64,000 nt of DNA from contig OZ249441.1 of assembly GCA_965235115.1 (NCBI GenBank), positions 4,836,001 through 4,900,000 on the forward strand, written 5' to 3'. The notes under the pieces were generated by a model. The model did not search any database. It saw only the letters and a list, made by a program, of their open reading frames with translations, and was not told where the DNA came from. This document shows positions 1-47,700 of this stretch, piece by piece; position 1 is the stretch's first letter; the number at the start of each line of letters is the position of its first letter. The position numbers and the translations under genes were made by a program. This DNA comes from Laetmonice hystrix (taxonomy: Eukaryota).

Positions 1-1225
1 GACTATACCCCTAGAAACTATATGATTCACCTTTTCGACGATACATGGGCTCAAGTTCAATCACGACTATTATCTACTAAAATGACACATTTTATTCAAA
101 GAACTGTCATGAAAGAATTACAACTTGGCAGTATACCACTGACTAAACAATTACATCTAGTAGTCAATGAGTACGATTCAGCCTGGAGAGAAATCTCTAA
201 GTCCATTTATTGCCACCAGATGGCGACTCTCGTGTCGTGATTTGTCCCAACTCGTTCTGACCTCGCTCTAAATTTAATTCCAAATTACAAAACACAGCGA
301 TCATGACCACATGAAGACCCGAACAACAGGGCCTCAGCTCACCAAACTGCCACTTGTGTGAAAATAGTTTTCCTTTATACGTCTTATTTTTCCCCTCAAA
401 GACTTTTATTTGACTTCAATCCTGCCACCCCTTTCAAACTTCCCAATATCACTGTGTAATACTATGAAGACTTATTATGACCCATATAAAAACAAGATTA
501 GGAAAAACACACATGAAGAACCGTTATATTCATGATCTGTTAACAACAATTTATACCTAAGTAGACAGAGAAAATCTGGCTATGGAACATCTTATCTGAA
601 TAACCCTTCAAACTTTACCCGGACTGTCAATTATAACAACTAACCCGTCACAGAGTAAAACTACTCGATATATTGTACTATAGTGATCCAGGTTATGAGG
701 CAGGTCTTACTTACTAAACACACTTTCACGATGTGATATTATTCATAATTATCACACTTGCACAATTAAACATGACGTCAAAAACTTTCCACAAAGGTAA
801 ATTAATTTCAAAGTAGTATTCATTAGCCTTAGGGGCAATGCAACGTCCAAAACAAGCACAAAGTGCAAATACCGACATTGGACAAGAAAATGTCCTCAAG
901 GACAGTGTAGTTGTCACAGGTTGTAATCTGACCTTCTTGCTATATCCCATGCATGAAGATAAGGGCTAATATATCTTAAATCAACGACCTCCAGGAGTTG
1001 ACCTTTGGTCTCTCTCTAACCCAACTGCCATCAGTGTGCCAAAACCAACTAAATTGACACACTGTGACATTGGTAACAGTCTGCAGCTGGGAACCTTCGT
1101 ATATACAACTTAATTAAGTAAAAAAACATGATTTAAACAGCTGAAGAGAAAGAACACTGCTTCAAAGGGTCGCTATCTAAGGTTACCTCAGTTACGCCTG
1201 TTATGTTTAACAATTCAACTCCCCT

Positions 1226-4200
1226 TCATGGCTGGCAGAAATCATCTGTTGAACCACTGAAATCTGCACTATCGATCGAGTAGAAGGAGTTAGTATCATA
1301 TGAGGGGGCGTGGCCAGTCAGAAATGAATCCAGGTCTTCTGTTGAGGTGGTTTTGTTACAACATGTCCCTCCCTCGTGGTGGTGGCAGCCACACTCGGGG
1401 CCATTGGGACATTGCGTCGCCCCAGTTCCATCGCTGTGGGCAGGCTGGCCAAGATGCATACCAACAGGTCTGTCTTCGACGTTGGGTGATCGCAAAAGTT
1501 TCCGGTTAGACATCATTTCCTCATCTACTATGTGTGTAACTGCCAACTGCTGACCAAAGTGTACTCCCACCGGTCGGTCCTCTTGTTTAGGAGACATCCA
1601 CATTGAGCCGGAATCTCTCTCCCTTGGCTCATGCATACTTTTATTTTTTGGCGTCAACAACTGCGCTCTGTTTGAATCCAAACTGTACAACATGTGGGGC
1701 TCGATGTCTGAATGCCTTGCACGTTTAGCCTTGCTGTAATTCTCCGGAGTTGACGACGTCCAGGTCCGTCTCAAAGCTTTGGTTTTCCTCTCCTTCCAGG
1801 GACTGTCGACAAGGAAGATACTTCCTGCTGGCCTCACACTGGGGTCCCTACCTGGAGGACAGGCATTCAAGTGGGCTTTACTGGGAGCAAGTTCTTCCCC
1901 ATAGAAAAAACTTCCAGCTCTCTTCCAATCAACATGGGGCCTCTCGTTTTGAGCAAGTGACTGCGTGTGTGGATCTGTGCTAAACGTTCCTCCTGACTCT
2001 GCAGAACCCGAACACGATGACAGACCTCCCCGGATGATGGCCACAACTCGGCCTCCACTTCCTTCCGAATCAAGATGAAACCTCTCAAATCCCCAGCTGC
2101 TCGCCTCACTTTCAGGCCTTTCGTCTAGAAACGGTACATCAGGCCCCATCACTGCATCCTCTGAGCTTATACCAGAACCATCTTCGCCTGCTGTGTAACA
2201 TTTGTGGACAGTTGGCATGACAAGACTGGATGGGGTGTGAGGACTCCTAGAGATGGCCTGCTCTTCTTCCATGATCACCTCCTCATGTTCAGGTCCAGGT
2301 TCTGAGGCTGACTGACTCAGTGCAGAATGCCACAGTTGCCAGTTATCCAGGCTGTCACTGTGGGAATCCTCACAGCCAGGACCTTCTGGATGGACCAGTG
2401 GTTGTGTCACACACCCCTCTTCTGTGCTCTTCACCTTCTTGGCAGCTGGAGATTTGGTAGATTTGTCTGAGAAGTGTTCTGCATGATAAGCTGCAAACTC
2501 GGACAACTTTTGCTGCATGTCCTCAGCTTCTTCAGGCCTAACAGGCATGGGTGCTTTACCAAAGAAGGCATCTACAATGTCCATTAACTCACTAGTTTTG
2601 TCTTGTCTTGAAGGTGTTCTGAATCCCTCAATCAGCATAGGGCTGTTACTTCTGAGAACTGGTGAACTGTTGTTGTTCGGTTGTTTCCGGACCACAGTCA
2701 AGTTGTGACCGTCTCCGTCGTCAGTGTCAAAGAAGGTTCGGACATCTTCATTGGTAATGAGACTTTCATCACAATCCTTTTCTGTGAATAACTGTGAGGT
2801 TCCTGGACAATTAGACCCCTTGAAGTCATGACTGCTCGTCACCCACTTGAAGAATTCTTCATTCATCATTTCATAATACGTACGGCCTTCAGGATTAGCA
2901 TTCAGGTTGACATTTAACCCTTCATAGCTAACCTCCTCACAATTTTCAGTCTGACATCCTTTTGCTAAGCATACTTCAACTTCTGTTCCCTCTTGCCTTC
3001 GTCTTGCTTCCTTCTCTAGCATGTGATCCAAGTATGTGGTTCCTTTCTGGACTGACCGCTGTGGATCTTCTGTGGTTAGCTCAAACTGAGCTTTCTGCAA
3101 GGCAACATCCACCAAACACCATGCCATGAAGTCTTCCATCTCAGTGCCCGGGGCATTCTTAATCGGGCTGGTGCCGAACACAGCTTTCTCCTCTGGCTGA
3201 ATGTTCTTCAATGTGTAGCTGACAAGTTCTTCCGCAATTTTTTCCTCTGCGTCATTGTCCTCTGGCTGAATTTTCTTCAATGTGGAGCTAACGAGTTCTT
3301 CTGCAATTTCTTCATCTTCATCTGTTTGCTGTGCTACATGTACTTTGTTGAGGACTTCGTCTCTGTCCGACGCTTCATCTAGATAGCTGAAGAATCTGTC
3401 CACACTATCTAAAACTTCCTGTTGATTATTGTCCCTTTCTTCCTTTGCCTGTGGTATGATTAGGCTCTCCTTCACTGCTTTGTTCTCAGAGGTCTTTTTA
3501 TATTTCTCCAGAAGTGCTTCGACACGAGTTTGGGCTGTTTTCAATCGATGAGTCTGTGCAGCTTCTTGTGTGCATGTTGCCTCGTTGAGCATCATTTTAC
3601 GTGGTAACTTTGGAGCAAAAGCTGAGCTGTTATTTGCTATCCACCTGTCTCCTCTGTCTGGAGAGGATTCTACCCTCCACACCTCAAGAGACCTCCGTCC
3701 TCTTCTGTAAGCGTCAGACGCAGTGAATTCACTGACCAGGTGAGGTTCGTCCTTGCATTCCTCACTTGGTTCATCATAGAGAATCAGAACATTGCGAGCA
3801 TCTTCTGGGCCTGCCAGAGTGACCCGTCGGTCCTTTTTAACGGGCCTGGACCTGGGGGCTTGTTTTGATGACACATCATTTCCTTCATGCCATCTATCTG
3901 GGTCAGTAACCACATACGTCTTTTTTACGTTTCTCCTCAAAGATAACCTCTTCCGCAATGACCCAAAAAGCGACTGCTTCTTCTTAGGGGTTTCTTCCTT
4001 GGGTACTTCATCCCCTTCCTTGGGTACTTCATCCCCTGTAGGTTTGTATGTATTGAGACTTGGTGGAGCATCTTTCTTCCTATGCAGAGAGAATCTCTTC
4101 CGTTTGATGCCGGTCTTTTTTTGCTTGTCTTTCTCTTCACTTTCCTGTTTTGTCTTCTCTTCATGATGCAAACTTTCACCCTCTGCCCCAACATTTCCTC

Positions 4201-6219
4201 TCTGTCTGGGCCACGTACCAAACCCTAGACCAAACAAAGACTTCTTCTTGGGCTTTTTCTTGTCTGCACTTTCTTCTTTCACAAATGCGTCCTTGTTGAT
4301 GTCCATAACTTTCCCAGTGCTGACTGACTTGCGCTTTGAACTTTCCAAAGTTTCTTGTTCTCCAGATCTACGGTTAGAAGTGATGAAGTGCCCCAATGTT
4401 TGGGGTTTGTTGGATATGGCCACATCATCCATGCTTGCAGCTTTGGTACCCGTCAATGGATACTGTGGCACTTCACTACTCGTGGTTTCAACACTGTTGA
4501 TGCTGGCAGCCCTCAGCAGCTCTAGAGACCTACTAACTTCAAGGCCAGGCTGAAGAATTGAGTAGCGCTCAGACAGACGGCGTAGTGATGGCGAAAGCCT
4601 ATTTGTTTCCTGCAAAGTTTCCAGATAGGTGGGTTTCGTGATTTCCTCTGGTACTTCTCTGTGCTCATCTTTAGAGACGGCCAGAAACTGATCACATTTA
4701 TTGTCATCGTCCTTGGTGTCAATTGGGATGACTGCCATTGGTGACACTTTCCTGGTTGGTTTCCGCAGGCCGGTGAATGGAAACAGCCAAGGCCACCTGT
4801 GTGTATGTGACTTGGGTGATTTCCTGTCCATATCTTGGTCAGGATCAGGACTCACTAACTCCAACACATCAACTGGCTTGACCTTGGAATGACCTTCAGT
4901 GACCTTTTCCACATCAGTAGTCTTTGCAATAGAATCCTCCAAGCTGGGCATTACATCTTCCTTGTCAATCTCTCCTTCACTCTTCCTAAGTTTGCTTCTT
5001 TTGCGATGCGGAGAAATGGCAGCGAACATATGGGCAGCCCAGGTCCTGAATCTGGTTTGGCGTCGATTTCCAGAGAAAGGTTTTGGTTGTTCAGGTGGGA
5101 GCTCCTGGGCATCGGTTTCGAGTGGCAGCAGATCGTTTTCTTTGGCATTGGTTGGAGATGAGGGATTCAGTTCTTCAGAGGGGTGCTCTGTGATTCCCTC
5201 ATCCTTCCTATCCTCACTTTCTAATCCTGAGTTGATGTTCCCAGTAGCATTAGTGACAAGCTTCTTCCGATTAAGTTCAAGGCTATCTTTGATTTTCTCA
5301 GCATGAATCGTCCCCATGGCTTCTGTTTCAAGTGGGATAAGATCTCTTTCTTTGGCATTACTTTGCGAGTTTGGTTTGATGAATTTACTGTTTCCTCCAA
5401 AAGACACCCATTTCTTTATTGAAGGGCTGCTGCTGTTTGGTATGAAGAATCCGCCCTGGGTGTCATATCCCCACAGTACCGGTGCTGACCGAGTCTGGCC
5501 ACAGTCTTTCGGACTTCGCTGGGTCAGTTTAATATCAGTCAGCAGCCTCCCACCTGACGTCACCTCCACACTTACGCCTGCTTGAGAAACTTCACGTTTA
5601 GATTCAAAAACTCTGGGCTTTTTCTTCGGGGGTTTCTCAGATCCCAGAACACGCTTGGGAGGACTTTCTTGTAGAAGGAAAGCTGGGGAATCTTTCGGGG
5701 TGCCCTTTGATCTGCGCTTGCGGAAGGTCATCTTTGGAGGTGGGGTGCACCTTGCCTGACTAAGGGAATTGTGGTCAATTGGTACATCAGACAAAGATGA
5801 AGTTTTTGAAGTTGCAGACCTTCTCCCATCAAATACATTTGGTTCGCTAGCTTTGAGAGCTTCAAGTAAGGGTGACTTAACCTCAAAGTTATCTGGACTA
5901 CATGGAAACATCATGCTCTCACCAAACTCTACCGAGGTTGGACTAAGAAACCTACAGCCTTCACTATCTAGGCTTGTATGGTCAGCATCATGGAGAGGAT
6001 CCTCGTCGTCTTCATCAGCAGTGTATTTGGAAGCATCCAGTGCCTGAGATCCTGTGCTGTCTTCGAGACAGCTATGGGTCGGTACTGTGTGACCGTCTTT
6101 GGAAGCTGCATGTTCAGGAATCACCTCAAGGGGCTGACTGCTGGCTGCTGTCTCAGACTGAACACATGATTGATCCAGGTGAGCCTCATCACTACAGCTT
6201 ACGTCCAAGCCACCATTTA
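1226..6219 (-). CDS. Giant (~4994 nt) low-complexity coding exon/ORF, probably an alternative terminal exon of the SH3 adaptor gene
   Basis: Uninterrupted 1742-codon ORF (1226-6454, TTG start). A polypyrimidine acceptor tgtgtcttctctttccctcag|TA at 6219 is phase 1, matching the phase-1 donor at 7342. The sequence is rich in S, E, K and P with basic clusters, and I recognise no globular domain. TGA stop at 1228-1226. Confidence 0.75.
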
Positions 6220-7066
6220 CTGAGGGAAAGAGAAGACACAGTTCCACCATCAGCAGGTGACCATGCTGCCAAGTAGCTGTGTACCAACCTTCTCGAACTG
6301 GCAACGAACAGTGCCAAAAACGTCCAACTCCAATCAAACGAACCAACAGGAACGCAAAAAAGATAACATGGAACCAAAGGCAAATATTGCTTTCTTCCAA
6401 GAACCCTTGTATTATGAAGGGCTCAAAATTGCTACGTGGGGTCAACAAATGCAATCGATTTGACCAATGGAGACCATTTTGAAAAACAAGGTTGCCACTT
6501 TTTATTCCTAAACAGTGTCCCTGGCTCCCAAATAGAAAAAGTTGATGCCTAGTTGGCTGCTAAATGTTTTGGCCAACTTTGAGCCCTGGTATAACGTCTG
6601 AAATGAATAACTATTTATAGTAGCACTAACTCTCAGGAAGATGCTACCAGCCCATAGAACCAAGAATTATGATTTTATCATATTGCACGAGGGTCATGTT
6701 TCATGTAATGTGTGTGCCATTCTTGGTATCAGCTCTGTCAATATTTGGTTTACTGGGTAAGAAATCATTCCAGGCATCTAGAGTGATGTTGAGATATGCT
6801 ATTTACTTCAATATCTCCCACAACGGTCAACCTCCTCTTTCATTCTATCTATCTACCTGTCTACCTCCCTATCCTTCTCTCTTTACTTTACTGACTGACC
6901 TAAGTCAGAAACAAATGTCAGTGACAATATGTCAAAGTGAATGATACACCATCATTCAAATGTAGAAAGATTTCCCACTATGTGGAAGGGTTGGCAGGTA
7001 TGTGATGTCGATACAAGTTCTGGGATTAACATTATCAAACAAACATGTCCAGCACAAGACACTTAA

Positions 7067-7304
7067 TGCCTGCCACACACTATACGATTTTCCTATGATC
7101 TGATCGCATTCTGGGGCTTACTACCCACTTACGACTCGCCTACGACAATCGGAAGGGGTCACAAGGCCCCAAACAGCTGATTAGAATTTTGAATCAGACC
7201 ACAATCGGATCTCAAAGTGTGCGCGGGCTTATGACTCGAGTTGTATAGTGTGCGTGGGGGTGTGATTTGCCGCCCACTGGGAATCGTATAGTGTGTGGCA
7301 GGCT
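7067..7304. mobile_element. PIF/Harbinger-like MITE
   Basis: 22-bp perfect TIR GCCTGCCACACACTATACGATT (7068) / AATCGTATAGTGTGTGGCAGGC (7282-7303). Flanked by TAA and TTA (TWA-type target). Confidence 0.7.
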
Positions 7305-7341
7305 TTATGCACTCCTTAGTTATTAAAATTAAAGAAGTTAC

Positions 7342-10300
7342 CTTTTTTGTCCTCAGAGGCGTCCCTTGGTGGTAGTGTGGGCGGCTCTTTGGGTAACGGA
7401 GGCGGGGCCTTTTTCAGAGATGACGACTGCAAAAAGTTACAGACTCATAACAGTGATGGTTCAAACTTATAGAATCAAATATCCAGTTTTGAAAATTTTA
7501 TGTGGCACATTCTATTAAATCGTAAGTGCAGGTAACCTAAGATATCTTCTCTCTTTATTATCAGGACTTGATTTGGTAACTATTAATTTCCAGGCTCAAT
7601 GATCCTACCTTTTCCTCCTTTGGGTGTGCTGGTGCTCGTTGTGGCTTTGGCTCTGTTGGTTCAACTTTCTCAGAAGTTTTCTTGTTTCCTATGTCACCAG
7701 TTCGTCTCAAGTTGATGGGACCATCTTTGAATATATTCCCTAGTCCTACACCCATAACCTTCTTTGCTGGGATGACATCTTGCTTGTCGGAATCTGGTAG
7801 AAGACAATATATTTTTGTAAAATTGATACATACAGATCCATGATTTTTTTCCCTATAGACCCCTACCAAATATACTCAATTTTCATCCCCCAGCACACAC
7901 ATCGTTTGATCATTTTCCCCAGGTGTGGAAACGTGTGCCTCCCCATAGTCTACTCATGGACTATGAGGGTGTTTTGGAACCACCCCTCCAAAAATTGGCA
8001 CACTAATATAATTCATAATGATATTTAAAGTACTGCACCGTATATGAATGTGACTTAGACATTTCGTAGTCCTTAAGCATATTTTGTCAATGTGGAGAAA
8101 CTTGTCTTATGACAGCCCCACAAGTGAAAGCGAAAACAGACATACCTGTTGGTTTCTCCTCCGAGTTTTCATCCTCGACCACCTCTACAAAGTTGGAAGG
8201 GAACATTCCCATCTTGCCGTTGATGCTACCTTCCCACCAACCTTCCTCCTCCTGTAAACAACAGCCACAGTCTCACACAATGATCACCAACATAGCCGAT
8301 GGCAAGGCCAAGTTCACACGTTACCATTCCAAAATAGGTTTCCTTCAAAGCAACCACCAATTACAGTCGACTGTAACCATAACAAAATACTAGATCTTCT
8401 TTTTAACTACCCTTCAATTCTGAATAACTGACTCTTTCTAGTAAGCAGCTTGCAAGCAGACTGTCCACTTCTGATCTAAACCTAACGTGCGATTATTACT
8501 TCAACCAATAAATGATAAATCTGGTATGTATCATGCATATAACCACAGATCTTTTGCAATAAATTACCCACAAATGACTACGGTGGAAGGAAACAGGAAC
8601 GTTGTTCTGTTATTATCAGGATTAAGTTGTCCTAATGAGATAAGGCAATCCTTGACCTGTTTTACCTACTTCATGTCCTTGGACCTTAGCTTACAGATCT
8701 GCCTCAGGGTCAGGCTACACCGGCCCACAAACCCACAAACCAACTCTATAAATATGTCTAAACTTGTCCAGTTATCATTCAGTTTTTTAACAGTAAAGCC
8801 ACTGTTAGATACATGGCTGTGTACACGGAAGATTAAGGTAGTAGAATTCAATTTACAAGTGACCCAACCAAGGTTGTTTTAAAAAGGCCAACCTATACTT
8901 ATTCTTATCGTCTATCCATATACCAGTAAATGGAAGCAGATATAAAAAAATTCTGTTTTATTTTTCATAAAATAATTTTTTTCTGACTCGCAAGTATTTT
9001 TTTTTCCACTCATGTTAGCAGAATTTTACACTTAATTTATTTTGACCTCATCCCTACAGTTGCAGACTCACCTGTTTGATAATGTCCACTGTCTCGCCAA
9101 CCTCCAGTCGTAACTCGTCTTCATTTTCTGGCATGTAGCTGAATGCTACTTTGGCTCTCATCTTCCGTTTGGAGTGATCTGTAACACGAAGGTGCACTGC
9201 CATTATTAGCGTCTCTCAGCAATCCAATCAGAGCCTCCCAGTTGGCTGTGATGGTTTCAATCTCTCGCTGCGACAAACCTCTTTAGTTTGCCTCACCCTG
9301 AGGTATAGCGTCCTCGCGACCCTGTGGTGTTACACAAACTTAATCAGAGGTAAATAATGATGTCCTGAATTGTTCAAATATTTCTCGTAACCAGCGGCAG
9401 GCTAATCTTGTTAAGGAGACGTCACCAAATGCTAGCACTGCAGCCAAACTGCCTGTAAGTAGGCTGCCGTCGAAATTCACACCACCGGTAATCCTCTACC
9501 AACTGTCACACAGTAAATCCACGACCTGCTAGATAGGACCACCTCACACAGTCTGACCTCAATTTGGTATTCTCCCCAAAGGAAGAGATCAACTTGTTCA
9601 TGTCCAAACGCTAGGAGCTCCTGCCTTACGGTCAGTGTGACAGAGTACTACCAGTCCTTCAGTTGGACTCAATTGGCCTCCGTTATCACTGACATGATAA
9701 TAGCTCAAGGGTGACCTTTACACATACAATGTCTCCACCACTGTTTAATGTAACCTCTGGCATTTCCTGCTTGGCTTTTGTTAGTCTCCACTTACAAATA
9801 TGCAGATCAGTACACGAGTTCAGCAGTCGTTCCGTTCATCACGGATATGTAACTATATTATACTATACATAATACTATGTATTGGTAAGGACATGCATAT
9901 TACTCTGTATTGGAAAAATCCAATAGACCCTTACAGAGTTCAACAGAAGAGCAAAGAATAAAATCTGTAATATATTTGTAACCAGTCCATAACTGGCTTA
10001 CAATTTCTCAGCTGTGAAATTTCACAATTCCACCTTCTGATAACACGCCCCCGTCACATTGCGAGGTGTTCCCCTCTTTCTGACAGAGAGCAATACCCCC
10101 ATTCTGAGTTCTGAGTCAGAACCGTCGGCTGGGAGAGTGGAAGGTTGGCTTTGTGACCCATGAACAGGTACTGTCGAGGTCACTCACCTGTCAATGACTG
10201 GAGGTTCTCTCAACTCTAACTCAGTCACTCTGTGGTCTACTGGCTGTTTACTGGTCCAAAACTCGTCCCAGCCAAGTTCATACCAACCCCCTCCCTCTGT

Positions 10301-13300: not shown

Positions 13301-16300
13301 GTAGAATTAGACCAAGCCAAGTAAAAATAGAAGGACCCCTGCTCGTTAGACAAGCAGCCAGCCGTCATTCATGTAGAATTAGACCAAGCCAAGTAAAAAT
13401 AGAAGGACCCCTGCTCGTTAGACAAGCAGCCAGCCGTCATTCATGTAGAATTAGACCAAGCCAAGTAAAAATAGAAGGACCCCTGCTCGTTAGACAAGCA
13501 GCCAGCCGTCATTCATGTAGAATTAGACCAAGCCAAGTAAAAATAGAAGGACCCCTGCTCGTTAGACAAGCAGCCGGCCGTCATTCATGTAGAATTAGAC
13601 CAAGCCAAGTAAAAATAGAAGGACCCCTGCTCGTTAAGTTCTTTCATGTAAGGCAATGCATCAAGTAGTAATTCTTCTTTCAAATATTTTAATTAAAACA
13701 TTTTGGACCCAGAGGATTCTTCAACAAAAAATGGCCAAATGATTATCTCCAAGACACACGAACACATTCGGATCGTATTTGCGGTATTGACTGTTTTTAT
13801 CTTTTCAATGACTATCTCCAAGCACACAAACACATTCGGATCGTATTTGAGGTATTGACCGTTTTTATCTTTTCAATGATTATCTCCAAGACACATGAAG
13901 ACATTCGGATCGTATAGGTACCGTATTGACTGTTTTTATCTTTTTCAATGATTATCTCCAAGACACACGAACACATTCGGATCGTATTTGAGGTAGTGAC
14001 CGTTTTTATCTTTTCAATGACTATCTCCAAGCACACAAACACATTCGGATCGTATTTGAGGTAGTGACCGTTTTTATCTTTTCAATGACTATCTCCAAGC
14101 ACACAAACACATTCGGATCGTATTTGAGGTATTGACCGTTTTTATCTTTTCAATGATTATCTCTAAGACACATGAACACATTCGGATCGTATTTGAGGTA
14201 GTGACTGTTTTTATCTTTTCAATGACAATCTCAAAGACACACAAACACATTCGGATCGTATTTGAGGTATTGACCGTTTTTATCTCTATCTCCAAGACAC
14301 ACGAACACATTCGGATCGTATTTGAGGTATTGACCGTTTTTATCTCTATCTCCAAGACACACGAACACATTCGGATCGTATTTGAGGTATTGACCGTTTT
14401 TATCTTTTCAATGACTATCCCCAAGACACACGAACACATTCGGATCGTATTTGAGGTATTGACTGTTTTTATCTTTTCAATGACTATCTCCAAGACAAAC
14501 GAACACATTCGGATGGTATTTGAGGTATTGACCGTTTTTATCTTTTCATTTATTTATTGTAAAACAGGAAATCCAGAACGTAGTCTCGCTTCCTCTCCAC
14601 CACGATTAATTAGGCAGCAAGACCAGAACAAACCCCACATCTAATTAGCCGAGAATGCCTGACATACCTGGGTAAATGATTACTCAACGAGTTTTTTTTT
14701 TCACGTCATAAATATTTTTTATGATCACGGTGCACATATTTATTTAGGGTCGGTTGTTTTCTAGGGCCAGGCCCAAGGCTTCACAAACCCGGCCATCATG
14801 TACAGTACTGGGTCTGAGTGAACTGGTTAGAGTGAACAATTAGTGTCATGGCGAGTGGACCCAGCTACAGTGAACTCGCCTGGTCGAACTGGCACCAGAA
14901 GACGGATGACAGTCGAGGAGGGGGGGGGGTGTCGGCGAGGGGAGGGGGGGTTAAATTATCCTACAGGACATCACTGAGTCATCCCCTACCCCCCACATCA
15001 TCGACATCGTGGACTTAATCACGTCACTCTATTCTGAAACCTTTGACATCATGAGCTGTTAATAAATATCACATCACAAATACATCACATTTCACAGTCA
15101 TCAAGTGGTCAAGTGGTAAAACACATACCAGTCACACAGAATGTGAACTCAAGTGGTAAAACACATACCAGTCACACAGAATGTGAACTCAAGTGGTAAA
15201 ACACATACCAGTCACACAGAATGTGAACTCAAGTGGTAAAACACATACCAGTCACACAGAATGTGAACTCAAGTGGTAAAACACATACCAGTCACACAGA
15301 ATGTAAACTCAAGTGGTAAAACACATACCAGTCACACAGAATGTAAACTCAAGTGGTAAAACACATACCAGTCACACAGAATGTGAACTCAAGTATTTCA
15401 GTCTCCACCTGACATTTAACTGTGCTCAAGTGGTAAAACACATACCAGTCACACAGAATGTGACCTCAAGTGGTAAAACACATACCAGTCACACAGAATG
15501 TGACCTCAAGTGGTAAAACACATACTAGTCACAGAATGGGAACTCAAGTGGTAAAACACATACTAGTCACAGAATGGGAACTCAAGTGGTAAAACACATA
15601 CCAGTCACACAGAATGTGAACTCAAGTGGTAAAACACATACTAGTCACAGAATGGGAACTCAAGTGGTAAAACACATACCAGTCACACAGAATGTGACCT
15701 CAAGTGGCAAAACACATATCAGTCACACAGAATGTGACCTCAAGTGGTAAAACACATACCAATCACACAGAATGGGAACAAGTGGTAAAACACATACCAG
15801 TCACACATAATGTGACCTCAAGTGGTAAAACACATACCAGTCACACAGAATGTGACCTCAAGTGGTAAAACACATACCAGTCACACAGAATGTGAACTCA
15901 AGTATTTCAGTCTCCACCTGACATTTAACTGTGCTCTAATCACTGATCGTCACTCTGTTTTGGCTCCGCCCCCATAAATGGGAGCTAACCTTTACACCTG
16001 ATGAACTGCAGTTCGTCAAACTGGGTGTGTTGATTAACAATATCCAATCCCCCCACCCCGCCCGCCACAAAAATAAGAGAAAAGCAACAGAAATCACTCC
16101 AAATGGGCTAAATATTTTCATACGGATCACTATACCACTACCTACGCTAATTATCTGATAATCAGGGCATCCGCCAGAGGGGGGGACGGGGGGGATTTAT
16201 CCCCCCCCCCATGAATGGGACATGAGGGGGATATCCCCCCCATAAATCTGCAGAGCAGTGTTTTTTTTTAAGCTATTCTCGCTCTGAGAGGCCAGGAAAA

Positions 16301-19300: not shown

Positions 19301-22300
19301 TGACCATCCAGGAAGACCTCCTGATGCAGAATTCCTGAGTATGCCTCAACTGCCTAAAACTGACGCTAGTCCTGATCAGGCTCTGATATATGCCACTGTG
19401 TTCAGATCATTACACGAGCACCAAAGTCACCAGCCAATAATTGGCATACAATGAATATAAGCCAGAAACGTTTTCGCCGGTCAACCAACTAGTTTTTACG
19501 TAGGTCGTCCAGTACAAGCCAGGGAGAAGTTAATCAAGCCAGAATGTACCATGGTGCTGTTGGTAGCACCCCTACAGGCCGGGTGCTGGAGGGAGAAGGG
19601 GCACGAGGACTACAGAAGGCTTCCCTCCTGGAGGAGGTGCACCCTCCCTCCCTGATTATCCCTTCCCCAGATCAGGCGGATCACAGGCCTCGTCAGTCTA
19701 CCAACCTGAGTGTAGTTCACCCACAACTGGCTGTTCCTACCTGCCCAGAGTCTGCAGATAAAGTGGCCAACAACCTACCTTCTTGAATAGTCGACATCTC
19801 GGCAGGTATAAAGTTGGATAACTTATAGATCTAAATAATTCATATCAGAAAAAGGTTTGTTAAAGATCACTCTAAATAATATCAATGTCATTACAAACCA
19901 GCTCAGGGTCCACGAATCTCATGTCTTCTATAAATACATGCAAAATGCACACAGAGATTTATATCTTAATGCACCCAGTCCTTGACAGCTCAATGAAAGT
20001 CACTGACTCAAGTCTGTAGGTCTCCAAGAAGAGTTTACTGTATGAGAACAGTTACTGGTGCCTTCCAGTGTTACTGTAGTCTACCGGTGTTATGCTGAGA
20101 AACCGGGCCAGTGAGCATCCAGGTCACCTCCGCCCAGACTGTGGCACTGACTCCCTCCACTGTTTTCTATTTACCTGCTCATGCCGGGTCCACGCAGGCG
20201 CATATATATTTCCCACTGGTTTGATTCTGAGATAACTTTGGCGACCTTTCCCATGTACGATACCTGTAAAGGTCTTGGTGATCAAGACACCGGCAGAATC
20301 TGTAATGTGTTGGTATGATCTTGTCACTGACTTGACTCAGAATATGTGTGGACACCCACAGGCCAACACTTTACGACTTGATGACGCCTTCGCAAAGAAC
20401 CAAATAAAAAAACCGCATAGCTCACTCAACTTCCCCATACAATTGGTTGACGAGACTATAGTACAGAGCATGGCCAGCGTGAATAACTCAGCCCACCTGT
20501 GTCATGAAAGGGGCGTCCATAAAGACCATAATGTACCCCCTAAAATTCTGAATTTTGCTCTTGTCATCATTTCTATTGACCATGTGTTTCGTGAACCATT
20601 ACCTATAAAAATCTCTTCTCACAGGATGTATATGTACACCTCTCCAAGTGATACTTTAAAAAACATATTTTCGAAAGGAAAAAGTTAGAGTGCCTTGCCA
20701 ACATTCATTTCAAGTCACTTTACTTTCAATTTCATCTTGAAAAACCATCTTGGAGACTGTGCCTGTTTGATTGTTAAAGACTCCCTCTAAGTTCTAACAA
20801 TATGAGGTACACCTGTACCAGTACATCTTTCCCAGTTTACTATTTAAAGGAGACTGTAATGTCCATTTCAGGATAAGCAGCATCATAATAAATTAAAACA
20901 CTGTTAATTAATCTATTTCATACTCGACATCCTTTTTGTTGATGTGAAACAATACTGTACAGTAAAAAACCTGTGCAACATCTTGATAATTTCATGGTTT
21001 TCAAAAACTGAATGAACCTCAAATCTAGCTCAGCAATTAGGTTGTGATGACAACCAACACAGGGCTTGAAAAAACCACCATCCGAGATGACTAAGATATC
21101 TGGTCCTGCTTTGGGCAAGTAAAATATAATGTTCATTGTCTGATCGGATGAGTGTGGAAACTAGTAAGAAAAGAAACAACCTTCTGTGGTGAATGCATGC
21201 ATGCCTTCATTATGGTTGATAATGTCTCTAGGAAACACTCCCCCAGAGACAGGAGATAATTATCAATAGGTTCTCCAGCATTTCAAGAAAATACATTGAT
21301 GACAAATTCGGTTCAAAATACACATGCAAGACATACAACATGTATATTTATGAGCTGAATTCAACGGTGAAAGCAACAATGTTGAAATTAAAGGATTTTG
21401 GGGCAAGTGAAATACTGTCAGGCAAGTGGCTGATGGCTGCTGCTTGCCCGCAGGGCAAGTGGAGTTGACAGATTATTTTTGGCTCTGCAACAAAACATGT
21501 ATACACCAGTTTCCCTACATTTGTGAAACGGACATAATTACATAAATCTGCATTCAGACATCTTTTTTCAATCCTGAAAACCATTCTATTTCAGAGATTC
21601 CTGTCCAAAAGGGGTCCCTGAAAAATTCACAGTCTTACAGGCCTTGCCATTGCCATTGCGTGCCTAAAATCTGCACTAGGGGTCATTACTAATACTCTTT
21701 TCTTAAGACAAAGCCCGATATCTCACATGTTCAAGACAGTTTCAAATATAATACACAGTACTAGTACTACTACTAGTGCCCTGCAGTACACGACTTAGCT
21801 TCTGCAGCCATGCATGTAGGTTTGTTGTGAGAATAATTTTTCATATTTTATGCATGGTGCATACTGTGCATACATTCACCAATTTAAGAGCTGTATTGGT
21901 AAAATTAAAAAGTATTGAGGGCCCTCCTGCATCTCACTGGCCACTTGAAGGATAATCTGTACTGTAGGTAACTGGTACCGGTTAACAGTAACTCGTGTGT
22001 AGGTAATAGTTTTAGTAATGCGTGTCTCACCTCTCTTGACCACTTTGGCACCCGACGACGGAGCGGGGCCCATCTTGAGGCCTTCCTTCCCGAGTTTGTT
22101 TGCCATTTCAGCCACGTGGCTGCCAGGGTTTTTCTTGGGGGCATCCTTTAGTTTTGCCTTCTCTTCCTTCCTCAGCTCCTGCAGAAAAAAAATATGAATG
22201 ATTCACAGGTACGGTTTTCAGAGGCAGTTCTCACTTAATTCAGCTTCTATTTCTAAGAAAGTCCTTACCACTATTAACAGACGTAATCATAACGCCCCTT

Positions 22301-25300
22301 GCCAACAAGTCATGTAAATTATACCTCACCAGACCTCAGACTCTGTCCAGGGCAGGGCATTTAACTGTAATTGATCATAACCATGGGCACCCGTGGGCCA
22401 CACAATACCCATTCATATAAACCAATTCTGAAAACTTACCATCGTTTCATACACACACATACTTCATCCAGATTGATTCCTACAGTAGCCCCGAGATTCC
22501 TGGGTTGGTGCGGAGCCATCAGGAGCTACCGGTATATCTCAAACCCAAACATTGCGTGCCTACCCAACATGATTGGTTCAGGGTTTAACCTAGTTAGCTT
22601 GGTGGGACAGGTAGTTAACTAGATGCCAGCCCACAGCTGATGGTGAACTGAGCTAAACACCAAGCAATCCTGACCTCTGTACCACTAACTCCACTGTGTG
22701 TTTACAGAGTGGTGCTTGACTGACAAACCACCAAGGAGGTCGCCATGCAATTCTAGGAATGCACCTTTGCTACAGGATGCTCGCAACAACCTGGATTTCC
22801 CAAGCGTAGATTCCCAGGCTTTTTTTGACCAAGTCCACACCTATCCATCCACTGCCACAAGAGGTGTAAAACCAAATGATGAGCTCGGTGGATATGTTCT
22901 ACTGCTGATCAGGACAACTGTGTGACATCTCCTTGATAGCTGCTTACAATTGTAACTATGCATATATGTAGATCATGCAGAACGAGTCGTATAACTGGGT
23001 CCAGCGTGCCATAAAAATCTCTCTCTTTAAATTCAGCACTAATATAAGCATCTAGTGGGCACCCGGTGCTCATGTTCTAATTAACTGTACATGTATATCA
23101 ATACTAATTTAAAGCACAGAAATTCAAAACTCTCTTTCGTCCTTATATTTTAAAATTAGGCAGATAAATGAGAGACATAGAAGGTCCTTTTGGGCACAAC
23201 TAATATTAAATATTTAATAAAAAAAAATAAAAAAACTGCACAGCCATGTTTTGCCATAGTCAAATTTTCCTGTACTTTTGCCAGCTTTGCCATCTTAGCT
23301 AGTCTTCCCTACTACTAAGGCCGATCAACGCTATTTTCAGGGTAGGGAATTTCAGACCTCTTTACCCTATCACAGGGCTCAAAATACTTAAAACTACAGC
23401 AGCCATAGTCTAAATTGGATGGGGAACTTGGGAAGAAATGAACACTACCCAAATAAAGTCATCCACAGCTGCCTATTCCTTCACATACTCATTTAGGGCA
23501 GCTTTCTTTCTTCCTTGAAATTACAAATTCAATCATTGTGTCATCCGAAACTTCCACCCGCTTCTCTAACTTCAGCTGTTAAAATGTTAGAAAATATCTT
23601 GAGCCACTCCCCCTGCCCCCCCCCCCCCCCCCTCAAAAAAAAATCTTGATTTATTATTTTTATATTTACCTTGACAAAGTTGTCTGGGAAGACACCTCGC
23701 TTCCCGTTGAGGTCTCCTTCCCACCATCCATCGCTGACAACATTAACGTTTGTGATGATGTCACCGGGTTTGATGGTCAACTCATCGTCCTCTACTCCAG
23801 TGTAGTCATACTCCACCAGCACCTCTAAAAACACACAGCAACCAAATCATCACATCATCTAACTCCACCAGCACCTCTAAAAACACACAGCAACCAAATC
23901 ATCACATCATCTCAAACTCCACCAGCACCTCTAAAAACACACAGATCCCAAATCATCACATCATCTCAAACTCCACCAGCACCTCTAAAAACACACAGCA
24001 ACCAAATCATCACATCATCTAACTCCACCAGTACATCTAAAAACACACAGCAACCAAATCATCACATCATCTCAAACTCCACCAGTACATCTAAAACACA
24101 CAGAAACCAAATCATCACATCATCTCAAACTCCACCAGCACCTCTAAAAACACACAGCAACCAAATCATCACATCATCTCAAACTTCACCAGTACATCTA
24201 AAAACACGCTCAACCAAATCATCACATAATTTCAAACTTCTGCAAACAAGGACAATTTTCATGCATGAATCATAAAAATGATCAGGGTTGTATTAATTTG
24301 TGTGAGGCATAATTTGTTTATTTCCAGACTAGATTTTGAGTCAGATTTTGTAGGGTTCACCATCATCATTAATATGTCACACATGATGTCCCCATCATTG
24401 GTGCATTATGACATGTCAATCATCCATGACCCATGATATGGTTCCTCATAGCAAGTGTCACAAGCATGCATCATCACGGAGGACACCAGAGGGCAGTACT
24501 GACTCCAAGGCCTGTCCCTACACTCATCTGACCCAGTCGGCCTACCAGAGACATGTGTGCACAGAGCAGCACAAATAATTCAACCCTTTTCAAAGCCACA
24601 TTGACAGGCCCATCGTGTATGTCCTCCTAGCAGCCATCTCGAGTTTTAGACAGTGCAGTCAGTCACTGGCACTTTCACAACTTTAGATGGCATAAACATT
24701 TTTAATCATTTTAAATTGATCACCATAATTGTTGACAATGGAATAGATCTGAGCCTGAGGATCTGAGCACTGGAACTCTGAATATATACTCTCACTCCTC
24801 AGACCATTATCAGTGCTTCCCATTTGAAATCTTTACGGGAGTCATCCATCACTCTCCTTGGTTATCCGAGGAGAGCTAAATCACGCCCCTAGAAATTGTT
24901 CCTGTCCCACGTTTGGGTATTTCCAGGTAAACTCAGGGTAGTTAATAAGGTTTGGCATAGGCTAAAGAGGTCCTGGGAGCCGTCTCGGGAATGGTTGGCT
25001 CAATGACTGGGGGACAAGGAGGAGACAGAGGGCGTTTTTGACATGGCTGATGGTTCACCTCAGTCAGAGAGTCAGGGAAGTTGAGGGGCGCGATGAACAG
25101 TGCTTCTTAAAGAAATTTTACGGGTGCTTAGGGGCGCAAGCGCGATCGCGCCGGTCAAATGGCAAGGCCTGCATTATTATGGATGCATGATAATTGATAT
25201 CAATAACGACATTCTATTCTAGTGGTACACTACCTACACCACTAGATATCATCTGTAAGTCTAGCTCCCAAGTGGGGTTATAATTAAACTGTGGAAATGA

Positions 25301-40849: not shown

Positions 40850-42513
40850 CTACTTGTTATGCTCCTTTTGTAGTCGATTGGTGTATGCCCGAGAAACGAG
40901 GTTCCATGCATCCATGTATCGGTCCATGCACATTGCTATACATTTCTGAAATGGAAAAAAGAAAGTAATGTACATGTCCTAGAAGAACATCTTTGTCTTT
41001 TGGATTATAACAAAATATCCTGTTAAATGCTGATTGATTTTTGGATTGTCATGTAAAGATTTTCAGTAACAAATCTGTCAGGAAACTTTATCATAACACA
41101 GGCACAAAAGGTATGGAAAACTTGTGTCAATATATTCCCAGTCTTTAACTACATAAATAACAAAAGTACAAAATTTATGACTCACTGTTTCAGAGCTATC
41201 AAGTGATGTTCCTGGCTTTGTTATACACTTTTTGAAGCACTTGTCAGACATTTTCTGTAAATATTGAAAAATCAATTTATGTTAAAAAACACTCTGCCGA
41301 TCGGGGGGGGGGGGGGGTGGAATCTCATCCAGGGTTCTCACCAGAAATTTTCGACAGCGTAGTGGTCAAACCAAGCGCAAGAGGGGTACAGGCGGGGCAA
41401 CCCCCCCTCCCTTCCAAGCTCTGGTAATTTAGGCTATTTTAGGGCCTTATCTTGCAGTCTAGATAGATAAGAAAAGCTTTCTAAACTGGATAGTAAACGA
41501 ACAACTTTTTACAGGTATTCTTATGGGTTCTATTGAATTTAGGCAAGTTTTTGCCACTACGCTGGTCAAGAGACAGGGTAGCGGCCTCAAAGACAGCGTA
41601 GTGGCCTAAATACACTACGTAGTGGCCCGCTATGCTGAAAAAGGCTGGCGAGAACACTGTGAATGGACCCTGGTCATGCATGGAGTGGCGGTGTGGCTGG
41701 CAGTGATGTGCACTGGCTGTCGTCCGGTCGTAAATTACGACCTAAAATGATTCCGGACGACCTAATTGTCCATTTCAGTCATCCGGAAATACGACCTAAT
41801 CATCGCATTGCACACAGACCCCGAGCCAAACCCAACACTGCCGATACCACACTTATCTTGAGCAACTCCCAGCCATCTAGCTAGGTTCCCGCATAACCTA
41901 CTAGATGGCGCCCCGGTGTGCGATCTGTAACGTTAAATGTTGCCACTTCAGGCTTTAGCACCTAAGTGATTTGATAACGTGAATTCTGATTGGCTGTCAC
42001 TGGAAAGTCACCCAATCAGAACAGGCTATACACTGAGCTTTGCAGCTGTCGTTCAAGGTCGAAGCCGGCAGCTGTTACGACTGCGGCCGCTCTCGAGAAT
42101 CATGTGGAAGTATCTTACTGGGGCTAAAAATAAAATTAAAACATTTTGCAACTGAGTTGTGACTTTGTTGGGATGTTCAAGACTAATGCCAAATCTGACT
42201 TATAAATCTTCTTAGTCTTCACTCTAATAATTAGTAGTTCACTGAACAGTGTCAATGTGCCATGCCCATGATGGATACCCATGCCATGCCCATGGGCTGG
42301 CCATGGTCATGGACATGGTCCATGGATCATGCCATGGGGGTGGGGGGAAGGGCACTCATGACATGACACTCCAGTGGAGTCTGACGACACCGACGTCCGT
42401 ACCTGTAAGAGTTCCTGCGCATTTGCTACGGCGATCTGGGCCTTTACTTGGTCCATCAACTGGTCTCTCTGTCCGGCATCAATTTTACCTCCAGCTGGGG
42501 ACGAGAAATCCAT
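40850..42513 (-). CDS. TIMM13: Mitochondrial intermembrane-space small Tim chaperone Tim13, complete, 91 aa
   Basis: Exons 42513-42403 ([37 protein letters not shown]), 41254-41186 ([23 protein letters not shown]) and 40945-40850 ([31 protein letters not shown]). Twin CX3C motif, phase-0 GT-AG introns, candidate AATAAA on the minus strand at 40598-40593. Confidence 0.96.
41330..41659. mobile_element. CAGGG-ended MITE in TIMM13 intron 1
   Basis: TIR CAGGGTTCTCACCAG / CTGGCGAGAACACTG (2 mismatches) and repeated GCGTAGTGG subterminal motifs. No TSD seen. Confidence 0.55.
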
Positions 42514-43235
42514 CTTGTTTACTGGATGATGAAGGGCACAACAAAACCAGATCCCCGGGACGATCTCTTCACACGTGAGGGACAACTTTAGATGCCGGCA
42601 AGGGCAGCAGAAAATACAGCACATAAATCCAAGAAAGTTCAAATAGCTAATATTGCCATTGCATTTAATCATTTATTTTATTTTATTACATTTCTCTTTT
42701 AATTCAAAATAAAAGATGTACTTTTTAACTTGATACATGATTTCTAAAATGATTTATTATCCGATCGCAGCAAGGTCAAAGTGCACGCTGGAGGAAGCGA
42801 GAAATGAGCAGGGAACCAGTCACCTCGCTTGCGACCATCAGCGCCAAGGAGCGAAGCGGCGGGTAGGGGAACCAGGCTAGGTTCCCGCTCAGGGAAACCG
42901 TCGCCTATCACAGGCCTAGGCATATAATTTGGAATAAATTGGACTAGCAATATTCCGACAGATGGTGAGAAAGTGAAGGAGGGTGTGGACAAAGGAAGCA
43001 AGGAATTATGAGATTGTTAATGTTTCTCAATCCTTACCAGTCTTTACCTCCCGGTCCATTCTATACCATGGTGCCACCTTACGATAAACACATGAACTAC
43101 ATAATATTAAAACTAAGCAGTGTGGACGGACTACTGGACGAGCACAACAACTTCGTCCGTCGACACTGGAGCACACAGTCAGAGGAAGATGGCAGAGCCT
43201 AATAAACAACCTGTTTTATTCACTTGGAGATAGAG
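42514..43235. promoter_or_regulatory. Probable bidirectional promoter of TIMM13 (-) and DOP1 (+), including a putative non-coding DOP1 exon 1
   Basis: Head-to-head arrangement, with a CpG-rich core at ~42770-42920. A strong donor GAG|GTAAGT follows 43235, and an acceptor tttattgacag| lies 17 nt before the DOP1 ATG (44743). Confidence 0.5.
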
Positions 43236-44742: not shown

Positions 44743-47700
44743 ATGAACATTGTCAGTATTGAGGAGTGCGAGCTGCTTGGCGACTCCAAGTACCGTGCGT
44801 ACATCTCACAGGTGGAGAAAGCTCTCAGGAACTTTGAGAGCACAAGTGAATGGGCAGACCTCATATCAGCTCTGGGCAAGCTGAACAAGGTGAGTGACTA
44901 CCAAAGAAAAAAAAACGCCAAAAAAGAAAAGAATTTTTTGAGGTACCTGTACAGTACAGGGATGGTTGATTCTTATTGCCCCGCAATGACCAGTCAATCA
45001 AATGTTTCGTTGAACCTAGCAGATTACATATACAGTAGTACCATGGCAATTACATGGACTTAAAAACCAATCTATGAAATTCTTTGGGCAGTTGATTTCA
45101 GAGAACAGCAATTTGAGCAAATGGAATTTTACAGCCCAGATTGAAAAGTGGGTTGAGTTAACAATTATAAAAGATCATTACCATCAGTACCATCACCAAG
45201 TTGTTTTCTACAGGTTCTCATGAGCCATGTGAAGTATGCAGTGATCCCAAAGCGTGTGACCATTGGGAAGCGTCTGGCCCAGTGTTTGCATCCAGCACTC
45301 CCGTCAGGGGTCCATCTCAAGGCCCTGGAGACCTACGACATCATCTTTAAGTGTGTCGGCACCCAAAGGCTGGCGGCAGACCTCTTCACGTACAGCGCTG
45401 GCCTGTTCCCATTGTTGGCATATGCAGCCATGAATGTAAAACCAGTCCTGTTGGCCCTGTATGAGACCCATTTTGTGTCACTTGGACGTTACATTAAACC
45501 AGGCCTGACCGGGCTCCTCCTGGGTCTACTTCCTGGTCTGGAGGAGGGATCTGAACACTTTGACAGGTGGGCACTACTTTAGTTTTGGTTCATGTTAGCC
45601 CTGATACCATGTCGGCTTATATAGTACTCTATATAGTCTGGCAGTAGACATACATCTGTCTAGGAAAAAGGGAATCAAAATTTTGAATGTAACAAGCAAA
45701 GTAAGCATGTGGAACTTTACTGTGTTCATAATCGTTCACCAAGTCATAAGCTAACATCCTTGGCTTTGTTACATTTTTTTTTGCTCATTTTTGAGTAAGC
45801 TCCCTATTGTTTACTTTTTGTCACTGTTTAACAGGACCAGTAAGTTACTGGGAGACTTCTGCGAGGCAACAGAACCAGCCTTTTTCTACGGTTGTCTCTG
45901 GGAGTGTGTACTCACTGTGCCAGGGGTCAGGCTGGCTGCCATCAATTTTGTCGTCTCCAACTTCAATAAGAAACGGTCCATGGAAGATCAGCTCTACTTC
46001 ATGGGTACAAACATAGACGTCCTGGTGAGTAACACAGAGTCAGTGCTATAGTCAGTCAAATCAAACTGGTTCCATGACAAACATAGACGTCCTGGTGAGT
46101 AGCACAGAGTCAGTGCTATAGTCAGTCAAATCAAACTGGTTCCATGACAAACATAGACGTCCTGGTGAGTAACACAGAGTCAGTGCTATAGTCAGTCCTG
46201 GTGAGTAACACAGAGTCAGTGCTATAGTCAGTCAAATCAAACTGGTTCCATGACAAACATAGACGTCCTGGTGAGTAACACAGAGTCAGTGCTATAGTCA
46301 GTCCTGGTGAGTAACACAGAGTCAGTGCTATAGTCAGTCCTGGTGAGTAACACAGAGTCAGTGCTATAGTCAGTCAAATCAAACTGGTTCCATGACAAAC
46401 ATAGACGTCCTGGTGAGTAACACAGAGTCAGTGCTATAGTCAGTCCTGGTGAGTAACACAGAGTCAGTGCTATAGTCAGTCAAATCAAACTGGTTCCATG
46501 ACAAACATAGACGTCCTGGTGAGTAACACAGAGTCAGTGCTATAGTCAGTCAAATCAAACTGGTTCCATGACAAACATAGACGTCCTGGTGAGTAACACA
46601 GAGTCAGTGCTATAGTCAGTCAAATCAAACTGGTTCCATGACAAACATAGACGTCCTGGTGAGTAACACAGAGTCAGTGCTATAGTCAGTCCTGGTGAGT
46701 AACACAGAGTCAGTGCTATAGTCAGTCAAATCAAACTGGTTCCATGACAAACATAGACGTCCTGGTGAGTAACACAGAGTCAGTGCTATAGTCAGTCAAA
46801 TCAAACTGGTTCCATGACAAACATAGACGTCCTGGTGAGTAACACAGAGTATAGTCAGTCAATCAAACTGGTTCCATGAGAATGTAATGCACTGAAACCC
46901 CCAGACTGACTAGTAAAAGTCATGCAGCACTAATTCAAGACTGGACTCAAAAATTGTTACTTTTTTTTCCAGCTTAACCATTGAGTGAGTGAAATACTTG
47001 TTGTGTACAGAGGTACGTTTTACTGCAGGCTTGTCCCAGTATTGAGTTTGAGATATTGTCGTGTGTTTCAGGTGGAGGCTATGTGTAACTCCATCCAGGA
47101 CACGAGCGTGTTGGTACAGCGGTCAGCCCTTGACTTGCTGCTGATCGGCTTCCCCATGCACAACAGCCAGTTAACGCGGCCAGACATGGCCATCCTAGCC
47201 ACGGCGGCCATCAAGGCTGTCCTCCGCAGGGACATGTCTCTTAACAGGTATTAAATACCATTCATCCTCCGCTGATTTATTTTTGAAGCCAGCATGACAA
47301 GTTCTCTAGACTTTCTATGATGTTCAGTCTCAAAGACGTACCTAATCATTTCATGTTATTTGATTAGGGAACCCACTGATATTTCCTTAAGGTATTATGT
47401 TTGTAAAACAATGGCCTTTTTTCCCATTCTTGTTAATCTTTGCCTGATCTACAGACGTCTGTATGCCTGGCTGCTTGGCACCGATGCGAGTGGGAACCCA
47501 CTCTCAGTGCCTGCGAGCATGATGCCCGTCACAGCCCGTGACCGCACTGACAGCACAAGTACCACCAGCGAACCTGAACTGGCCTACTTCAACACTTTCT
47601 CCAAAACTCTGCTCGTCAGTGGCATCCGCACCTGCATCCAAGAGGCGACCAAGAGCGATGCTGTGATAGATGGGAAGCCTGCGAACCTGCGACCATTCCG

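Follow-up and report, generated by a model that had tools for sequence, protein, structure and literature searches.

Gene organization at the locus

A 64,000-nucleotide stretch of the Laetmonice hystrix genome (assembly GCA_965235115.1, contig OZ249441.1, positions 4,836,001 to 4,900,000; hereafter the window) carries, on its minus strand, exons of an adaptor gene of the CIN85/CD2AP type and, in line with them, a giant open reading frame (ORF). All coordinates are counted from the first letter of the window, negative values lying before it. In the ORF listing of the window, the giant ORF is given as 1226..6454 on the minus strand (1742 aa). Its frame is open without a stop from 6559 down to 1229, that is, over 1777 codons, and by our own estimate the probability of such a run is (61/64)^1777, or about e^-85, which excludes chance. 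The gene model around the ORF comprises the following features.

29706-29698 and 29466-29458, minus strand: two candidate first coding exons, each ...ATGG/GTAAGT, from a pattern search and sequence reading
23670..23824, minus strand: SH3A exon with a phase-1 acceptor and AG/GT borders; Pfam SH3_1, 2.4e-16
22031..22178, minus strand: linker exon between SH3A and SH3B, AG/GT borders, in frame
9072..9178, minus strand: first half of SH3B, from sequence reading
8146..8251, minus strand: second half of SH3B (EEEGWWEG...FPSNFVEV), from sequence reading
7609..7793, minus strand: linker exon GVGLGNIF..., ending ...PKEEK in phase 0
7342..7426, minus strand: 85-nt exon with PTLPPR and a phase-1 end; branch point of the two isoforms
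6220..7341, minus strand: intron removed in the giant isoform, GT..AG, with a dispersed repeat
1229..6219, minus strand: giant alternative last exon, coding part, 1664 codons including the split first codon
1226..1228, minus strand: stop codon of the giant isoform
91..1225, minus strand: presumed 3' untranslated region (UTR), with AATAAA at 410-405, 211-206, and 96-91

The 85-nt exon 7426-7342 has AG/GT borders, and its last base, g, is the first base of a split codon (phase-1 donor). This codon is completed by ta at 6219-6218 to encode V, after which the protein continues NGGLDV.... The acceptor tgtgtcttctctttccctcag, a polypyrimidine tract with an AG ending at 6220, directly precedes 6219, and translation of 6217..1226 yields 1663 residues and the stop. 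An earlier reading of the same DNA from its letters alone (the sequence-only reading) had proposed that a phase-1 donor at 7342 is joined to a phase-1 acceptor at 6219 that opens 1664 codons, and the translation and the splice borders confirm this. The joined product of 1927 aa that it had calculated is reproduced by our spliced model, in which all borders are AG/GT and the inferred first exon (ATGG) is included; either candidate first exon would supply Met and one base (phase 1). The minus-strand AATAAA that it had noticed at 410-405 is present as well, along with the two others listed above. The best PDB matches of SH3A are CIN85 SH3A (2bz8) and CD2AP SH3A (4wci).

Canonical exons beyond the window

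For the SH3C and coiled-coil exons, the sequence-only reading had pointed to the DNA past window position 1. When 60 kb past the window start were searched, both were found on the same strand. An SH3 exon lies at -7219..-7446 and has the CIN85 SH3C structures 2ydl, 2k9g, and 2k6d as its best PDB matches; proline-rich ORF pieces lie at -7789..-7959 and -9268..-9504; and the last canonical exon, at -15717..-16007, has 2n64 and 5abs, structures of the CIN85 coiled coil, as its best matches (E 0.002). Measured from the giant ORF, the SH3C, proline-rich, and coiled-coil exons are 8.4-22 kb downstream. At about -11990, LTHLGAGRVKAPPTRRP (LTHLGAGRVK...P) keeps the L, H, R, K, and distal P of the capping-protein motif, whose consensus is LxHxTxxRPK(6x)P, and is without the T and the P of RPK.

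The three SH3 domains are most like SH3A, SH3B, and SH3C of CIN85/CD2AP (SH3B as read from the sequence), and the gene product continues from SH3C into a proline-rich region and ends with the coiled coil. Judged by its predicted exons, the locus is a complete, single CIN85/CD2AP-type adaptor gene. Since the SH3C and coiled-coil exons lie downstream, the intron that separates the 85-nt exon from SH3C is where the giant ORF is situated. Like the acceptor of the giant exon, that of SH3C is phase 1; therefore, either acceptor fits donor 7342, and the two acceptors are alternatives. The protein of the giant isoform is without SH3C, the proline-rich region, and the coiled coil, because its stop at 1228-1226 precedes those exons.

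The acceptor regions of SH3A (window 23824-23900, minus strand) and SH3C (C6:4828780-4828860, about -7220..-7140) are each tandemly duplicated. At SH3A, 52 nt further upstream, there is a 39-nt copy that comprises the polypyrimidine tract, the AG, and the first 15 bases of the exon, and its use would lead to a stop; at SH3C, ggttgtgtttacagtgcag occurs twice upstream of the exon. These duplicates may be decoy acceptors or neutral duplications.

Transcript evidence for the giant exon

Four runs of one sample (X1 to X4) contain the stretch, and a library type is on record for none of them. Their assembled contigs, not reads, were mapped on window 1430-7429 only. In X1-X3, exon and intron are evenly covered and the joint between 7342 and 6219 is absent, as in DNA. 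X4, by comparison, has zero depth at 6230-7029, within the intron. An X4 contig contains the joint 6219/7342 predicted by the sequence-only reading; 1122 bases are skipped, and their borders, CT..AC on the plus strand, are GT..AG on the minus strand. Because X1-X3 are without the joint and X4 is without intron depth, we read X4 as an RNA run and the joint as a splice. The junction contig has a depth of 136, versus 135 in the 5' part of the giant exon. Its loose end past 7428 consists of the last bases of exon 7793-7609, and it alone covers exon 7426-7342 in X4. Along the giant exon, the X4 depth is 135 at first, on the 5' side, and climbs to 810 by 1430.

Furthermore, of the words sampled from the last canonical exon plus its 3' flank, X4 contains a fraction of 0.71. 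Thus, the canonical 3' end and the giant exon are both expressed in the same sample. The joint in X4, an SH3C acceptor of the same phase, the expression of both 3' ends, and an AATAAA past the stop together characterize an alternative last exon. In the giant isoform, the poly(A) site used would lie near 405-410.

The same depth profile has to be read against the alternative raised by the sequence-only reading, an independent one-exon gene that lies within the CIN85/CD2AP intron. The giant ORF would then have a promoter and a start of its own, and the spliced contig would be minor read-in. Such a gene could use the in-frame ATG at 6250-6248, which is 10 codons upstream of the acceptor, and an internal start would also give the sixfold rise of X4 depth toward the 3' end. 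However, this is the sole in-frame ATG upstream of the acceptor, and it lies in a part of the intron (6230-6429) where X4 depth is zero. Moreover, the match in depth between the junction contig and the 5' end of the exon indicates that the transcripts present at this end are spliced in.

The position between SH3B and SH3C would also permit the giant exon to be an internal cassette, with a donor before the stop that leads on to SH3C, in which case the protein would exceed 2300 aa and have three SH3 domains. The contig mapping stops 200 bases short of the end of the ORF. In contrast, no loose end inside the giant exon is reported for X4, and the X4 depth keeps climbing to the 3' end, as is expected for a last exon.

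Two further features of the mapped region concern the exon and intron next to the joint. Site 7385 in the 85-nt exon is heterozygous C/A (Glu/Asp) in the DNA-like runs, and the A allele alone is present on the X4 junction contig; this pattern may reflect allele-specific expression or a collapsed assembly bubble. The dispersed repeat in the intron, at about 7030-7310, has many loose ends. Over it, the depth of X1-X3 is 380-2750 versus about 50 around it, a 10-50-fold excess at 7030-7429.

Conservation of the tail and of the locus arrangement

Homologues of the tail encoded by the giant exon were sought with word-based searches, whose candidate lists saturated, and then with an exhaustive HMMER search using a two-sequence profile of residues 45-1100. 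Nine clusters were found in other assemblies. The first two word-based searches had P0001 as their sole match (1645 aa, 48% identity over 97% of the tail). The exhaustive search added seven further clusters of 405-1661 aa (P0002-P0008), and a later word-based search with an 8-sequence profile, which returned P0001 and P0012, added the latter. All of these homologues are unnamed stand-alone ORF calls on eukaryotic contigs. Pfam recognized no family in the tail and seven homologues, and a comparison of the tail with its own 627-Mb assembly gave no paralogue and no repeat copies.

The ORF and SH3 exons are on the same strand in all six loci that have enough flanking DNA (P0001, P0002, P0005, P0007, P0008, and P0010).

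P0001 locus: SH3 ORF 3 kb upstream, same strand
P0002 locus: ORF downstream of the SH3B exons
P0005 locus: SH3 ORF downstream
P0007 locus: SH3 ORF upstream
P0008 locus: SH3 ORFs on both sides
P0010 locus (L010): SH3A, linker, SH3B, GVGLGNIF exon, 82-nt phase-1 exon, ORF, SH3C

In L010, the 82-nt exon is the homologue of the 85-nt exon 7426-7342 and likewise ends in phase 1, and the acceptors of the ORF and of SH3C are both phase 1. A phase-1 polypyrimidine acceptor opens the ORF in six of the six loci with DNA (L009, L010, L014, L015, L016, and L023). We estimate that the same phase in the window and six loci would arise by chance about once in 700 cases, from (1/3)^6. Thus, the ORF that the sequence-only reading had proposed to search for in other genomes is conserved there, together with its acceptor phase, its stop, and its SH3 neighborhood.

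All homologue ORFs are closed by a stop. That of P0001, the closest relative, is at most 4 residues from the stop of the window, and the C-terminal ...YSIDSADFS.STDD is conserved there. Both observations speak against the internal cassette, which we regard as very improbable; a stop conserved in all homologues also sets this exon apart from an internal giant exon of the ankyrin type.

The comparison bears equally on the nested gene. The exon has its first Met at residue 102, and the residues ahead of it, 51-101, share 56% identity with P0001, so coding conservation starts before Met102. The window and the six loci all retain a phase-1 acceptor that fits the donor upstream, and there is no conserved ATG, several of the called starts being GTG or TTG from a prokaryote-style gene caller. 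The four conserved islands described below are all downstream of Met102, and a tail-only protein would retain them. Considering these observations together with the zero depth at ATG 6250, we find the separate nested gene a weak proposition and improbable, although an additional internal start within the giant exon may exist.

P0006 is on L024 (ENA ERZ23486783), a scaffold labeled METAG from a sample designated as a metagenome; the animal DNA there carries the same ORF as GCA_013332975.1.

Composition, disorder, and conserved islands of the tail

The tail is rich in S, E, K, and P and has a net charge of -52. In a charge-hydropathy test, 16 of its 17 100-residue bins are disordered. AlphaFold2 produced isolated helices only and no fold, both for residues 860-1300 (2 sequences), with a predicted local distance difference test (pLDDT) value of 35, and for residues 120-340 (10 sequences), with a pLDDT of 54. 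ESM Atlas gave no usable result for the whole tail or for residues 100-340. The tail is predicted to be intrinsically disordered, in agreement with the sequence-only reading, to which it had looked like a disordered S/E/K-rich segment.

An alignment of eight to ten homologues, with an overall identity of about 20%, contains four islands, each kept in 7 to 10 of 10 sequences.

5681..5791, minus strand: island 1, SDVPIDHNSLSQARCTPPPKMTFRKRRSKGTPKDSPA, a basic cluster with PKA-type and Ser/Thr-Pro sites
5375..5416, minus strand: island 2, KKWVSFGGNSKFIK, an RVxF-type motif followed by a hydrophobic pair; candidate PP1 dock
5258..5308, minus strand: island 3, IHAEKIKDSLELNRKKL, the sole predicted helix in residues 120-340
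4553..4630, minus strand: island 4, TYLETLQETNRLSPSLRRLSERYSIL, from the alignment of homologues

The consensus of island 1 is [DE]VP..S.LS.AR.TPPP..TFRKRRS.GTPK.SP., with eleven columns invariant among 10 homologues. That of island 2 is [KR][KR]xVSF...D.[hydrophobic][IL], in which V and F are invariant in 10 of 10 sequences. Islands 3 and 4 follow ID..KI.DS..L.R.K. and TYLETL...GRLSP..R.L..[RK]Y.I., respectively.

Two other candidate motifs were rejected. Regular-expression matches to an A-kinase-anchoring helix (AEELVSY.LK.IQP) are at non-homologous positions and in about the number expected by chance (0.77), and PKKKPR, considered as a CIN85-SH3 ligand in the tail, is not kept in P0001. The tail also contains a 23-residue tandem duplication at window 3220-3360 (tail residues about 968-1008), IAEELVSSTLKKIQPE... 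/ IAEELVSYTLKNIQPE..., which is not in P0001. Toward its C-terminal end, the tail of the window has two copies of the unit SP.xEDRPVG.H.GQ, and P0002 has more.

A sequence of this kind, with no recognizable domain and with fast evolution (identity is 48% with the nearest relative and about 20% with distant homologues), might be expected if splicing noise led into a fortuitous or decaying, functionless ORF, such as a former mobile element. However, the frame is kept open over 1000-1660 codons in ten lineages at the same position of the gene. The invariant islands, the absence of paralogues or repeat copies, and the high RNA-like depth also contradict noise, as does an excess of synonymous polymorphism: 19 of 38 listed heterozygous sites in the ORF are synonymous versus 22-34% expected from the codons (p 1e-4 to 0.03). 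Since the arrangement has been kept while the identity of the tail fell to about 20%, we take the giant exon to be functional, and noise is scarcely credible.

Alternative last exons and their proposed products

It is very probable that the giant ORF is a conserved 5-kb alternative last exon of the CIN85/CD2AP gene, which is spliced after the SH3B linker and gives an isoform of about 1927 aa. We observed the ORF with its matching phases, the spliced contig, the canonical exons further downstream, and the conserved arrangement, and the explanation builds on these. The sequence-only reading had suggested an alternative terminal exon that replaces SH3C and the coiled coil, and the X4 joint, the exons found downstream, and the conservation all support it. 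In the literature, we found no paper that reports a giant or alternative last exon for CIN85, SH3KBP1, or CD2AP.

Splicing at this gene would offer two choices. In the first, donor 7342 would be joined to the proximal acceptor 6219, and the 5-kb exon would be the last, with its own stop at 1228-1226 and its own 3' UTR. In the second, the giant exon would be skipped, and the same donor would be joined to the SH3C acceptor about 8.4 kb further on, giving the canonical product with SH3A, SH3B, SH3C, the proline-rich region, and the coiled coil. The product of the first choice, of about 1927 aa, would retain SH3A, SH3B, and the PTLPPR linker. It would exchange SH3C, the capping-protein-type motif, the proline-rich region, and the oligomerizing coiled coil for an acidic, S/E/K/P-rich tail of 1664 aa. 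This tail could act as a string of short docking motifs and may serve as a scaffold.

Some points weigh against an alternative last exon. The joint rests on one contig in one sample, and the library type of X4 is not on record. The sixfold 5'-to-3' rise in X4 depth could mask an internal start inside the exon. The mapping of X4 covered 1430-7429, and the poly(A) site and the joint from 7342 to SH3C are presumed. Finally, the first coding exon is inferred.

A candidate PP1 dock in the tail

Island 2 suggests a possible partner of the alternative last exon's tail, the phosphatase PP1. It reads KKWVSF in the window and K[SRNH]VSF, RSVSF, or RRVSF in other homologues. It fits the RVxF-dock pattern [RK]-x(0,1)-[VI]-{P}-[FW], is conserved, and lies in a disordered context, in a low-confidence coil of the model. 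A stricter RVxF pattern fits 8 of 10 sequences. Island 1, basic and with Ser/Thr-Pro sites, is about 100 residues upstream of island 2.

The sequence ...GRPVTPPRG... stands at the end of both PP1 genes in this genome. No intronless PP1c was found in the genome, all three PP1-like loci consisting of short exons. In ASPP proteins, PxxPxR of the PP1 C-tail is contacted by the SH3 domain, a second contact is made by an RVxF motif, which reads RVSF in Drosophila ASPP, and both contribute to binding (PMC6377682). Because a tail motif of PP1 is bound there by an SH3 domain beside an RVSF dock, a two-point complex with PP1 is conceivable for a protein with SH3A, SH3B, and RVSF.

Several observations run counter to this idea. 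RVxF-type matches are expected by chance about once per tail, and the matches per protein are no more frequent than that; hence, the argument for a PP1 dock rests on positional invariance alone. The KWVSF of the window fails the stricter pattern mentioned above. A pull-down study of the SH3 domains of human CIN85 makes no mention of PP1, and the ligand consensus of these domains is PX(P/A)XXR (PMC2702278), which the PVTPPR of the PP1 tail does not fit. A complex prediction for SH3A and the 34-residue PP1 C-tail scored 0.04, which is neither for nor against binding.

On balance, the likeliest specific mechanism for the tail, recruitment of the PP1 catalytic subunit by the invariant [KR][KR]xVSF island, is possible but doubtful; the SH3A/SH3B head would then carry PP1 to the proline-arginine ligands of the adaptor. 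Somewhat less likely still, and drawn by analogy, is the fuller proposal that the giant isoform could be a lineage-specific PP1-targeting subunit, which would bind through island 2 and possibly also through SH3A/SH3B on PVTPPR, with the choice of the last exon as the switch and island 1 regulated by phosphorylation.

Other features in and around the window

Upstream of the adaptor gene, an exon at 42310-42672 on the minus strand encodes a small Tim-type sequence and probably belongs to a Tim8/Tim13-family gene. At 13696-14553 and 46064-46795, two minisatellite arrays account for long, repetitive pseudo-ORFs of the minus strand. The DNA immediately preceding window position 1 (C6:4835783-4836000) is a long simple repeat encoding (SLPP)n in three frames. 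Further on, at C6:4790083-4793319 (-42681..-45917, minus strand), there is an open ORF of 1079 aa that by eye resembles ORF2 of a non-LTR (long terminal repeat) retrotransposon (endonuclease / reverse transcriptase).

The assembly includes a 16.8-kb mitochondrial contig with all genes on one strand, in the order cox1-N-cox2-D-atp8-Y-cox3-Q-nad6-cob-W-atp6-R-H-nad5-F-E-P-T-nad4L-nad4-C-G-M-rrnS-V-rrnL...nad1-I-K-nad3-S-nad2, which we take to be the annelid ground pattern and which points to an annelid. This contig (C35) opens, at positions 1-2045, with a 512-bp unit repeated in tandem about four times, as judged from the periodic recurrence of ORF positions; the array presumably represents the control region.

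Comparison with known systems

The alternative last exon in the window is real; it belongs to a CIN85/CD2AP orthologue, is expressed, and has been conserved in evolution. CIN85 and CD2AP are much-studied adaptors in receptor down-regulation, B-cell signaling, kidney podocytes, and Alzheimer risk. The choice of the last exon lets one gene make a protein three times larger, in which the ligand-binding head is kept, the oligomerization and actin-capping links are lost, and a 1660-residue disordered tail with conserved candidate docking islands is gained. All public homologues of this exon are unnamed stand-alone ORFs, an instance of how automatic annotation overlooks giant alternative exons. If the RVxF island does bind PP1, the isoform would represent a new class of phosphatase-targeting subunit and would make the endocytic/actin adaptor CIN85/CD2AP a phosphatase-recruiting scaffold.

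The gene shares with CIN85 (SH3KBP1), CD2AP, and Drosophila Cindr the domains SH3A-C, the proline-rich exons, and a CIN85-like coiled coil, and at the position of the capping motif it has the partly matching LTHLGAGRVK...P. In contrast to these proteins, the giant isoform stops after SH3B and the linker and adds 1664 residues from one exon. The isoforms known for CIN85 and CD2AP owe their origin to small exons or internal promoters, and none is much longer than the canonical forms, most differences being a shorter or only slightly greater length; to our knowledge, all of them stay within the plan of SH3 domains, proline-rich region, and coiled coil.

Among disordered PP1 regulators, NIPP1 and KNL1 have an RVxF motif followed by a hydrophobic pair. 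Island 2 resembles them in its basic run, VSF, hydrophobic pair after about five residues, and disordered context, whereas there is no further similarity and the other three islands are without a known counterpart. ASPP1/2/iASPP (PPP1R13) combine SH3 with an RVxF motif, just as the giant isoform has SH3 domains and ..VSF in a genome whose PP1 tails carry PVTPPR. However, the giant isoform is without ankyrin repeats, its domain order is reversed, and about 530 residues separate its SH3 head from the motif.

The giant-exon isoforms of ankyrin-B and ankyrin-G (440/480 kDa) are made with an internal exon, and their downstream domains are kept. The exon described here is terminal, replaces the downstream domains, and has no sequence similarity to those of the ankyrins. 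Nevertheless, in both systems, a modular adaptor is extended through alternative splicing by a long and mostly disordered segment from one huge exon.

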